DNA of 64,000 bases from Eutreptiella sp. 'Long Island Sound 2002' (Eukaryota > Protista > Euglenida): the NCBI GenBank assembly GCA_964036045.1, contig OZ038378.1:11470001-11534000 (forward strand), written 5' to 3'. Both the position numbers and the translations under genes were made by a program. This document shows positions 6,020 to 21,000 of the stretch, in pieces. How positions within the stretch are numbered: position 1 is the stretch's first letter; every line of letters starts with the position of its first letter. The notes under the pieces were generated by a model. It was not told the origin of the DNA and searched no databases. It worked only from the letters and a program-made list of their open reading frames with translations.

Positions 6020-9000
6020 ATGAACCCTGGCGCACACCGGCTCAGTGTGCCCCAGTCTGAGGATAATGGGAGTGACACCTCATCTCCTGATAGAGCTCAA
6101 GTGCCACTTACTCCTCAGCACCCAGTCGTTGACATGCTGCGCAAGTTTTCTCTCGGGGAGAGCTTGCTCGGGGACAGTGTGCAATCTCGCAGGTATATGC
6201 GACGCGCATGGGGCACTTCGGATACCCCGGGTGCATGAGGGATGGGCTCAGGGTTGGAGGTAATTCTGGTTCTGGGTGCAAATGAGTGCCCCGCCCCCCC
6301 CCCCTCCCATCCTGTGTCACGGGGGTCGCATGGTGGCTAAGTATACGTTGCTTCACAGCCCTCCCATCCCGTCCACTGCAGCAGGCAGGTCCGACTTTGG
6401 TGAGCTATGGGCTAACAGATTGGCCCCTCTCTGGTTTTAGGATGGGGAAGTCGACTTTTCAAGGTCTTCAGGGCGCCTTACAACACTGGTGGACCTACCA
6501 ACAGAAGCACTGCAGAAGAAACGTTAAGGTTTCAAAACGGGATCAAACTGGGGTCGCTTTGGACCAGGGTACTCTTGGAGGTGAAGCCATTACTCGATGC
6601 CTTTGTCAGAAGTGAAGACGGGCTTGCGGGGGTCGGGACATAGGTGGGCTCAGAGTGAATTCACGGCGACGGTATCCCATGGACACGAAAGGATGACACA
6701 CCAAATGGAAGCAAACTGCGTCAGTCAACGGGCAAGCCATCGCTGTTGTCGAACATGAATATGGCCAGGCTATGGTGTGGTGATCTCAGGGCCGTGTGTG
6801 TACGCCACTTCTGACAACGAGAATCGGATGGCGGTGTGCAGGCCAAGAGGGACAGGCATAGACTGGGCTTGAAAGCCTTTGACTTTTTTTAATGTCGTGC
6901 AGTCTTGGCAGGCCCATGCGCCGCCAGACCCCGCCACGCTGGACCTGGCTCACATACACCACCAGACCTCAGTGCTTAGACCTCAAATCATCATTTGAAA
7001 GGGGCCACGATGTGCCGCAATTGGCCACTGGCGAGCGGTGGGGCGTATCGTGACTCTGACCACGGCACGCTGTGTCGGGCCATGATTTGCGTCCCCAGCT
7101 CATTCCCCCCGCACTCCTTGGTGTTCCAGGACGTCAGCTGAGAGCTGTCCGCCAAACCCCTTCGAGTTCAGAGCTGCAGCCTTGAAGACGGAGATCCAGA
7201 CCGTCGACTTTGGGGACACGTTCGGAAGAGAAGACTTCCATGTTTACCCTCGATATACCAACCTCACTGCATTGGGGTCAGGGGGGTACGGGTTCGTGGT
7301 CTCCGGGGAGGATAGCTTGGCAGAGGATGAATTGGACAGGCCCGTGGTGATCAAAAAAATCCCGTCCATTTTCAAGTCGCCCTCTCTCACAAAGGTTTGG
7401 CCTTGCTCCTGGCGGGCTCGTGGCTGGTTGCGGGCACGATACTGGCATCCCAGTACGCGGACGGGCGGTGTTGCGATCGCAGGTTCAGCATTACCGGAAT
7501 TATCTCGGTTTCTCATGGGCATCGGCCGAATGCATATGTTCAGAGGGTGCTCTGCGCCGCATCTGAAGTTGGAACTCTAACACAGGGCCAGGGGGTGCCA
7601 GGGGGTCACCAAGTTGAACAGATTGGTGTGCTACAGATGCCAGGCAGTTTGCCTCATGTGCACACTGTTGCATTCTACCCCGTTGAGTGTGGCTCCTCTT
7701 TGCTGCAGTCTTTTTTGCTGCTTGCTCTCTTGTGCTCTCTCTGTCCGACCAGAGAGGGGCCGGGTGATATTCCCTTGTGCCACCCGTTTGGCCCATTTTC
7801 CCGTGTTATTTGAATAATAGGGTGTGGTGCGGGTTGCTAAAACGCACCTTGTGGCCGTACGACACACCCATGATCAGGGAGGGATGTGATTTTGACGTCA
7901 TGATTTGGAGGCGGGGGGTGTCGGGGGCCATGATGACGAATTCCGATTTCCGAAACACCCACAGAAGTCCTTAGAAAAGGCTCTGCCCGGAGAAATATTC
8001 CCCCCATGATGCACACCGCAAAATGATCAGTGCGGCGTTGGGATAATGTTAGGGGCTGCATGTTGGGGTATCCTCTCCCCCGCCAGCCCAAGTCAGAATG
8101 GCAACGAGTAAGTCCTTACCAGAGGCGCCCGTTGCCGGGCAGGGCAGGTAAAGTTGGTTGCTTGTCTTGACGCGCAGCATTGTTTCAGGGGCCCCTGCAG
8201 AAGGTAGATCGACGCATGGTGGCCAGAAGAGCCGAACCGTCTTCTGTGTCCCCGAGACTGATGGGGTGGTGATGGATGAGACTGCACCCCAAACTCCAGC
8301 AGCCTCGCTCAGGCATCAAGGGGGTAGTATCCCATGCCTCCTCCTTGCCTTTTGTACCACTTCAGGCCGGGCTGAGAGAAGTCACCCTCCTTTCCTTCTT
8401 CACACATGACAACATATTGCAGCTGAAGGATATCATTTTACCGTTCCCACAGCGGCCTGATGGTATGCCTTGCCTGGAGCGGACAGCAGGGTACGGAAGG
8501 ACGGCAGGCGGTCAGGTGTCTTTGGGTCCTTTGGTGGTGGACAGGGCTGGGCGTTTCGTGATGGGCAGCTGTGGCTGTAGGGATGACGTTCTTGTGGAGG
8601 CGTGGGGTTGGCGGTGAGCGTGTTGTTGTGTGGGAAGCACCACCTGCGCCAGAGATGCATCCTCATATTCTTGGAAAACCCCACGTGACCGTATGGAGTG
8701 ACATGAACAAGTGACAAAGAATAGCAGAACACCAAACCGCAGTGAACGTCGTATGCCCCAGCCTTCGTATGGCAGAGAGAGCCTTGAGTTGGCACTGGTC
8801 AACTCACGGCTACGGTCAGGTCAATTGTGTGGCCATAATTTCAAGCCTAAGGCGAGCAGAGCGCACAACTGGAATTGGTGCTGCCGTCGCCTGGACGAGC
8901 ATTCTTGTGGCGTGCGCGTCTCGCAAGGGGGCTCTGCTACTGTGTCGTGTGGAAGCAGAGTTAACATCAAAGGCCCGAGCACGGAGGGCTGTTGTAAGAC

Positions 9001-18000: not shown

Positions 18001-21000
18001 AAATGTGGATGAGTTGGACTCTGGGATTGCAGTCCATTCCCACACAGGCATACAAATGTTTTGTTTCCCCGGGTAACCAGTACCTCATATACCAGACTCA
18101 CCTGACGACAGGGCTTGACAATTCGCTCCTGCATAGCCAATGCAGGGCGCTAAGGGGTAGTCTTAACTTCACGGCATCAGCGCCGCAAAGAAAGATTGCT
18201 GTTTTGCAGAAACAAACCAGAGCCGCCATAGGCATTGTTGACCCCTCGGGTTTCCATTCCGGCGCCAACCCTGGTTTGCTTCTTAGGCTGAAAATTGCCG
18301 CGCCAAAATAGCAGAAAACGAAAATAAACGAAACAATTGCTACTGCACCTACCTATCTTTACTAGTGCTACTAGTGCATCCATCCTTCAAACAAGTAGGT
18401 CTGCATACCCGCCACCCAGTGGCTGGGCCCCAGGTCTGTCGCCCAGGGTTGGGAAGGGAGACGTACCTACTTACAATCACCCAATATCTTGTTTGACCCA
18501 AAGGTAGTAACTGATCCCACCTATTTAAGCACAGCGGTCTATTTAGGTCGCAGTGGTCCAGACAAAGCTCCTACTTACCACAAACCAATATCGTGCCAGA
18601 CAGTCACCTGCCACCCTGTGGCTAGGCCCCAGGTCGCTTGCCCGGGTTTTGGAAAGGAGAGAATTTGTTAACCCAACCTCGTTTTTGATTGTTTTCATAC
18701 TTCCTCTCTGATTTTGGCGCTCGCTGCACTACATCACTAATATCGATCTCGGAAACGTTTCGCGCTAACCAAACGAAACCTACAAGAGAAAAACAGGCAT
18801 ACCTTCCCTAACCTTCCCTGTTTGCAACCACCTTCGCAGAAGAGGGCCCGGTTAAGGAAGTGAGTGATGGGATGGAGTGGTGAGATGGAGTGATGGGATG
18901 GAGTGATGGGATGGAGTGATAGGATGGAGCGATGGGACCGGGAACCCATTTTTGCGTAAGGCATGAAGCCAATAAATAATTTTTTACACATTTTTTTTGC
19001 GGACAATAACACCTTGTGCCGGGAATTAATTATTTACGCAAATCTTTCGGATTTGCATGGTATTAGATCTGTATGACCAACCCCGTCCTACACACCTCTC
19101 TTTTTCATATTTTTCATTCTATTATTATCATATTATTCGTTCAATCCATCACACACTGCAATACACATTCCAAGTACCAGACGCCCCGTCTTACATAATC
19201 TAAGACGGGGCGTCTTAGAAAATCTAAGACGCCCCGTCTTAGATTATCTAAGACGGGGCGTCTTACATGCGTCTTACATCCGTCTTACATGCGTCTTACA
19301 TCCGTCTTACATGCGTCTTACATCCGTCTTACATGCGTCTTACATGCGTCTTACATGTGTCTTAGATTTTCTAAGACGCCCCGTCTTACAACAGTACTGG
19401 AGCACGTGAGCCCCGCGTCAAGATCCCCCAAGTGACCGTACTTGGGGGTCCCACACGCAGCTCTGCTGGTTGCAGGCTACCGCAACCCCTGTCGCCTGGT
19501 GGGGACAGGGGCCCTGTTGGCGCCCGACCGGACACGCAACGCGTGATTTTCCAGAGACGGGGAGACCAAGTCTCCGAGGCGCTCCGTCGTGCCGAGGGCC
19601 GGAGGGACTTCGCACGGCTCTGCGCCCACACGCGGGGGGCGGCAGGTTGGCGCGTTGTTGCCCCCTTCGTATTCCTCTCACCGAGCCCTACTGAATGATG
19701 GCTGACCTGTTGGATGTGGGGGCACCCCCTCTTGAGTCAAGGCCCCCTGGAGGCCCTGGAGGGAGACGCAAACACACGTGTGCTACAGCTACGTGCCTCC
19801 GAATGAACGATCTCTGAAGCTGTTGGTGGACGGCGTTGGTACACAAGGCCTGTCTTCCGGGGTTTCGTGCATGCGGTTTGTTCCGCCAGCGGGACATGTC
19901 GAACGTGGCTTGAAAATGTGCTTGTGGCGGTGCCGCGTGCGTGTTACCAATGGTCCCTTATGCCCCTGTGGATTGCCATCCCCCCTTATCCCTCCCCACT
20001 GCCCCAAACCCGGTTCTCCCCTCGTGTACATTGCAAGAAGGCACCACGTAAGGCGCACGGGTTCATCGGCTGGAAAAACCGTTTGTCGGTCAAGCGCTCG
20101 GCGGACAGCTCTCTTGATCGAACAGGGCTGCCGAAGGCTGTGTCCACAGTTTTTGTCTGTCCGTAATCCAGCATTCGGTCCTCTGCGTTCTGTTTGTAGT
20201 CGCAGCTGAACCTTCCTGAGGCCTGTGGCTCTGTTGCTGTTGCCAAATTCAGGACAACATGGCCCTACCGCCGTTGTTTGCAGGGAGCTTGTATTTTGAC
20301 CTGAAGTATTTAGAGTTCATGGGCATGTATTTGGTGCTCGAGAAGATGACATGCGATTTGGGGCATTTGATTTACGGGGACATGGACATCACTGTGGATG
20401 TCCGGCGCTTAATTGTTTATCAAATGCTCCGGGGCTTGAAGTGCATCCATTCTGCAAGGGTGTTGCATCGTGACCTGAAGCCACAGGTATCTGCTCCCTC
20501 CGACACAAGAGGGGGGCTTGTGTTGCTTGCCAAAAGTGGAGCATTTGTGGTATTGCGAAACGATGCCATGGGTTGCGATGCTTTTGTTCGCTTCCCAAGG
20601 GCAGCCAAGCAGATGCAACCACGCATGTTCTTTCTTTGTCGTGTCGTGCTGGTTGTTGTCATTCTGTTTTCTGTTCGTTTGATTTGGTTTATTCAATCGG
20701 TCGTTCGGCCTGTTTGTTCAGTTACTCGATTTATTTGTTTCATTCGGTTCCATTGTTGTTGTTTCTAATCTCCTACTGATGCTGTTCATTACAGTTTGGT
20801 TGTATTAGGCGCTGTTTCATTTGTAACTAGTGATGCTACCGTTTCTGTTTTTTGATGTCGTTGCCTATGAGGGCGCTGCTCCTGCGGCTCCTGCTGTTAA
20901 GAGTCACAGTAATACTGGCAAGGAGTACTGGCGAGCAGTCCTGGCTGTTGGTCACGTTCCATCAATTTTGTTTCAGTCGTTGTTCTAGCGTAACACCTCA

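Follow-up and report, generated by a model that had tools for sequence, protein, structure and literature searches.

Few DNA transposons are as poorly characterised as the Kyakuja-Dileera-Zisupton (KDZ) elements. Zisupton is known from fish, other animals, fungi and green algae, and Kyakuja from Agaricomycotina and Chlamydomonas. Until 2025 only Zisupton had well-described ends (2025 survey, PMC12730594). Zisupton and Dileera generate 8-bp target duplications, and Kyakuja generates 7-bp duplications and has CA..TG termini and no terminal inverted repeats (TIRs) (PMC12730594). Merlin elements have been reported from Euglena gracilis (PMC8101967), and a third of the repeats in the 2-Gb Euglena genome are unclassified (PMC11252322); a search of the literature at hand returned no paper linking KDZ or Zisupton with euglenids. 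Here, we describe an element of 10,416 bp at positions 8984-19399 of a 64,000-nucleotide stretch (the window) of contig OZ038378.1 from the euglenid Eutreptiella sp. 'Long Island Sound 2002'. The element is a complete cut-and-paste (class II, TIR) DNA transposon with definable ends. We hold, with a probability of about 0.85, that it is a full-length, recently active transposon whose transposase belongs, as a distant member, to the KDZ superfamily. Its ends, duplication length, candidate binding sites and predicted catalytic residues have been set from dozens of copies, which would widen the known KDZ range to a protist far from fungi and animals and provide a curated family for the repeat annotation of the 2-Gb Euglena genome.

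Ends of the element and its genomic copies

Each end of the element carries a 30-bp TIR, at 8984-9013 on the plus strand (end A) and at 19370-19399 on the minus strand (end B). Both repeats consist of a 25-bp core and five outer bases that are specific to the end. The cores (8989-9013, plus strand, and 19370-19394, minus strand) are identical in sequence, and the outer bases are GAGGG for end A (8984-8988) and CAGTA for end B, read on the other strand (19399-19395). Shuffled versions of the window contained no match to the core, and none is expected by chance within the window. Flanking the repeats are the two copies of a 7-bp target-site duplication, GAGCACG, at 8977-8983 and 19400-19406. A preliminary description of this DNA, made by reading the sequence, had recognised the perfect cores, the differing outer bases and the direct repeat, all of which are present at these positions. 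The interval that it reported for the transposon, 8977-19406, takes in both copies of the duplication, and the element proper lies within it.

Copies elsewhere in the genome fix these boundaries. The TIR core, with at most two mismatches allowed, was found 117 times in the 2.28-Gb assembly of 2317 contigs (59 forward and 58 reverse matches), and a reversed control pattern was not found at all. Every copy possesses one end of each type, and the outer five bases follow the end type and are therefore part of the element. Among the 33 end pairs examined, 25 have a perfect 7-bp direct repeat directly beyond the outer five bases and one has a repeat matching at 6/7 positions; the pairs lacking a duplication belong to nested or neighbouring insertions or to diverged copies. 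Since other copies terminate at the same bases as the window copy and 25 of the 33 pairs show perfect 7-bp repeats, the ends are fixed and the duplication is 7 bp in length. The alternative, Zisupton-like reading of 8 bp fits only some pairs, and on inconsistent sides, and is contradicted by the 25 perfect 7-bp pairs. No target consensus was seen across the 25 duplicated sites, and the TIR core was absent from the metagenome collection searched.

Full copies measure 10.2-12.0 kb, and their spread in length is largely due to varying numbers of repeats in a 169-bp array and in the subterminal arrays described below. In their unique parts they are 97-99.6% identical to the window copy at the DNA level. 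In at least eight copies the whole transposase frame is covered and free of stops, with 98-99% identity in amino-acid sequence; several others bear stops or rearrangements. The youth that had been proposed for the family is borne out by the high identity of its full copies and by these intact frames.

The transposase and its relatives

The main transposase exon occupies 11126-14367 on the minus strand and contains an open frame (11126-14332) of 1068 codons without a stop. A word-based protein search with its product returned matches from the same species only. The genome also encodes a sister family with an intact frame of 1069 codons, found at three loci (L031:2098-5307, plus strand; L032:2605-5814, minus strand; L033:2183-5392, plus strand), whose product is 33% identical to the window transposase. 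Conservation between the two families is concentrated in the N-terminal Cys/His-rich part, a central core and the C-terminal part.

Three blocks of the protein alignment outline a putative active site. In the first, a strand ends in D219 (codon 13676-13678, minus strand, as are the following) and is succeeded by a C..C..C..H cluster; in the second, a strand ends in D454 (codon 12971-12973) and a cysteine follows; the third comprises an invariant DRFH..H..C motif (12875-12904) and then E506 (codon 12815-12817) within a conserved EQ. The window copy retains all of these residues. An AlphaFold model of residues 195-640 has a confident core in which the strand with D219, a helix, the strand with D454, a helix, a further strand and the helix with E506 succeed one another. 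The best 33 structural matches of this model are all catalytic cores of retroviral integrases or DDE transposases (Z 9.7 to 6.1), which shows the fold class but not the superfamily, and Foldseek against the PDB returned weak RNase H-like rows only. The N-terminal domain is also modelled with confidence; its best structural match, of helix-turn-helix/Myb-like type, lies within the noise (Z 3.9). Model and alignment together point to an RNase H-like active site with D219, D454 and E506 as the predicted catalytic residues.

The superfamily is indicated by profile comparison. A two-family profile built from the N-terminal halves of the window and sister proteins was searched against 1.8 billion representatives and gave 276 matches at E<=1e-3, among them an amphioxus protein and an agaric fungus protein. 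The longer matches span profile positions of about 465-625 and bear PF18758 (KDZ) on this very stretch, and many matches extend, in collinear order, to a further block at the first catalytic aspartate. PF18758 is present in 18 of 40 aligned relatives, and CxC5 in 6 of 40, where it lies N-terminal to the first catalytic block; Chromo and CxC5 domains occur in the nearest profile matches. The window protein has conserved Cys/His clusters, and Pfam gave no match for it to a CxC family (CxC1-CxC7). Additionally, a language-model look-up found PF18758 in 24 of the 30 nearest Atlas clusters. Comparison by hhalign of the Euglena-type alignment with eight PF18758-positive proteins gave a probability of 99.8% (E 5.6e-30, 151 columns), in a test that is not fully independent, as the KDZ set was drawn from the matches of our own profile. 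Judged by these protein comparisons, the transposase is a member of the KDZ superfamily and a very distant relative of fungal and animal KDZ transposases.

This partial dependence of the hhalign test weighs against the reading of a recently active KDZ element, as do several other observations. Pfam assigned no family to the 1068-codon frame even at E<=1, and the sister family reached 12.8 bits with the Pfam KDZ profile, whose cutoff is 26.6. The window copy lacks 54 bp of the transposase frame that at least nine siblings possess. Finally, a transcript, an empty site and an insertion polymorphism were looked for and none was found. The preliminary description had proposed KDZ kinship, with Pfam KDZ, CxC5 and CxC6 as the families to be matched; the kinship stands as profile-level homology, and direct matches of the protein to the three families were absent at E<=1.

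The silence of Pfam on the window protein, together with the inability of a fold search to separate DDE superfamilies, would also suit a transposase of another DDE superfamily, of the CACTA/Plavaka, Mutator or hAT type, in which the KDZ signal arose from the shared fold. We consider this very improbable: the profiles match KDZ-positive proteins only, Pfam searches of these proteins bring up no transposase family besides KDZ, and the DRFH..H..C and cEQ motifs are shared with the KDZ proteins column by column. Membership of the KDZ superfamily is the reading that we retain.

The gene probably comprises more than the 3.2-kb exon. Resemblance to the sister family extends upstream of the first ATG of the frame, and an AG stands just before that point in both families. 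Farther upstream, a stretch that starts with ATG ends in the donor GTATGC in the same phase in both families, after 45 codons here and 47 in the sister family. We propose a first coding exon at 15039-15174 (minus strand; ATG, 45 codons and one base) that would be joined to the main exon by removal of a GT-AG intron at 14368-15038 (minus strand). Every one of 10 full copies preserves the proposed exon intact; BLASTP between the first-exon peptides of the two families gave no alignment and thus no statistical support. The uninterrupted 3.2-kb transposase exon noted earlier is confirmed as an open frame, but a short 5' exon probably precedes it.

The segment missing from the window copy, at the junction 14098/14099 (minus strand), comprises 18 codons and includes a conserved CxxC that is also kept in the sister family. 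In a second public assembly (ENA ERZ25074135) the locus holds this insertion too; it is 100% identical over 8.8 kb, includes the 54 bp and has a right-hand array longer by 120 bp (the region of window 19187-19265). Apart from these two differences the assemblies agree throughout the element. The gap is therefore an allelic or assembly difference. Autonomy, which had been put forward as a possibility, is thereby doubtful for the window copy as assembled here, without the conserved CxxC, and this copy may depend on intact sibling copies for its enzyme. It is nonetheless a real possibility, to which we give somewhat less than even odds, that the locus encodes a full transposase and the window copy is itself autonomous: the copy in ERZ25074135 includes the 54 bp and has a frame of 1082 codons from the ATG. 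Set against this are the absence of the segment from the sequence in hand and the conservation of its CxxC in a sister protein of only 33% identity.

Derivatives, subterminal arrays and lineage

The short derivatives anticipated for the family do exist: deletion derivatives measuring 1.5-4.7 kb and miniature copies (157, 356, 533 and 564 bp) share the termini of the full copies and are flanked by duplications of their own. Two derivatives of 4.1-4.4 kb, at C10:64.9 Mb and C1:1.67 Mb, both resume at the internal point 16759 and occupy different loci, each with its own perfect duplication. From the shared junction at separate, separately duplicated sites it follows that a deleted element was moved by enzyme supplied from elsewhere. 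Two diverged derivatives of 1.5-1.9 kb, C16:3526502-3527999 and C16:4582297-4584236, have flanks that are mutually reverse-complementary, which points to an inverted segmental duplication in which the element was included. An open frame beside one miniature copy was looked up and gave no record.

The family has moved recently. Whether it moves today is a separate matter, and one may hold that it is extinct and that its copies are the relics of a single past burst. The stops and rearrangements in several copies speak for extinction, and so does the outcome of the searches for a transcript, a polymorphism and an empty site: the left flank of the element is unique in the genome, the right flank is represented by weak old repeats only, and in the second assembly the site is occupied, with no empty allele. 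We nevertheless regard extinction as rather unlikely, given that the frame of about 1100 codons is unbroken in at least eight copies, that all ten full copies keep the proposed first exon, and that duplications are still perfect in 25 pairs. With its intact genes and miniature copies, this recently mobile family offers a candidate system for insertional mutagenesis in a host for which genetic tools are scarce.

Both ends are built to one plan, in which the palindromic terminal repeat is accompanied by two arrays, one made of 11-bp units and the other of 24-bp palindromes. At the left end, 7.6 copies of the 11-bp unit (9022-9105, plus strand) contain the 7-mer CGTCTTA, and the adjoining 24-bp palindromic units (9099-9273) contain the same 7-mer in both orientations. 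The right end has 24-bp palindromic units at 19187-19268 and 9.7 copies of the 11-bp unit at 19258-19364, oriented as in the left array (plus strand). Because the 11-bp arrays are co-oriented along the element, its two ends are non-equivalent and can be distinguished. Of the 41 occurrences of CGTCTTA or its complement within the element, 40 lie no farther than 290 bp from its left end or 215 bp from its right end, and the remaining 53.6 kb of the window has a single site. The sister family follows the same plan, but its subterminal unit is another one, of 10 bp, and its terminal palindrome is distinguished by a single base in the arm. As unit and palindrome both differ between the families, enzyme and motif change together, in the manner of binding sites, and we infer that the CGTCTTA repeats are candidate transposase-binding sites. 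A search of the element with Rfam produced sub-threshold microRNA-like matches on the palindromic arrays only, which we took as artefacts.

Two further non-coding modules are held in common with the sister family. One is the 169-bp tandem array, present in 4.8 copies in the window element (9406-10204) and in varying numbers among the other copies, which is about 85% identical between the families (range for shared modules, 83-87%); the other is a 495-bp module (17192-17686, minus strand) with 83% identity. From the sequences, this sharing looks like modular exchange between families. Copies of the 495-bp module at about 84% identity also lie at many other loci, and a first look at the genome gave 1655 candidates for it, versus roughly 60 copies of the element.

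Compared with the published descriptions, the end structure fits neither Zisupton nor Kyakuja. The element resembles Zisupton in having a transposase of at least about 1000 residues with a KDZ core, TIRs and a multi-exon gene, and in counting an amphioxus protein among the nearest profile matches of its transposase. It differs in its 7-bp rather than 8-bp duplication, in a protein that PF18758 does not reach and in its euglenid host; duplication length separates it from Dileera also. A placement within the Kyakuja lineage, rather than with Zisupton or in a lineage of its own, could appeal to the duplication, which is 7 bp in Kyakuja and 8 bp in Zisupton and Dileera (PMC12730594), and to the CA with which end B begins. 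Such a placement is unlikely. Kyakuja is described as lacking TIRs and as bounded by CA..TG, whereas here 30-bp repeats are present and the ends are GAG.. and ..CTG. The subterminal arrays are another difference, and no second gene, TET/JBP included, was recognisable in the element, where Pfam searches of the other frames, as of those at the sister loci, yielded low-complexity noise. Furthermore, the nearest profile matches carry Chromo and CxC5 and include the amphioxus protein, and lancelet proteins have been reported among the best matches of Zisupton-type sequences (PMC9297572). We describe the element as a divergent member of the KDZ superfamily and set it in no particular KDZ lineage.

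The crowding of short repeats into the last 200-300 bp, the unequal ends and the internal-deletion derivatives mobilised by intact copies recall the Ac/Ds, En/Spm and P-type systems. Those elements have transposases of unrelated superfamilies and duplications of other lengths, and binding to the repeats is a prediction here. In the mechanism that we propose, the transposase would be made from the short 5' exon and the 3.2-kb exon, and its N-terminal Cys/His-rich domain would bind the CGTCTTA sites that are concentrated in the terminal 200-300 bp on both sides. The two ends would then be paired and the element excised by the RNase H-like active site (D219, D454, E506). Joining into target DNA with a 7-bp stagger, followed by repair, would yield the duplication.

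More tentatively, the family may represent a euglenid-specific and still active KDZ lineage, marked by a 7-bp duplication together with long TIRs and dense arrays, in which enzyme and motif diverge jointly and other non-coding modules are exchanged between families; we think this possible, though improbable on balance. If it is true, the enzyme of an intact sibling and a donor of 157-564 bp could make up the first home-grown Euglena transposon tool.

Host gene and neighbouring sequence

The element lies antisense in an intron of a MAP-kinase-like gene. This host gene spans window positions 7086-8614 and 20220-25951 on the plus strand, with introns of about 1 kb. On visual inspection, plus-strand frames to the left of the element, at 7086-7577 and 8273-8614, contain the glycine loop and the lysine motif as well as the kinase subdomains that come next. 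To its right, plus-strand frames at 20220-20765 and 21152-21517 match positions 73-127 and 127-188 of Pfam Pkinase, a match split over at least two exons. Once the element and one copy of the duplication are removed, the flanking kinase exons stand about 1.4 kb apart, a spacing similar to the neighbouring introns, in agreement with the intron location and length of the preliminary description. Within the same host intron, to the right of the element, window 19718-19983 has matches of 68-79% at 28 other loci, and we read it as an old repeat or a fragment of a gene family. A spliced-leader-like stretch outside the host gene, at window 39942-39965, points to a Euglena-type organism; it matches the Euglena spliced leader with two mismatches.

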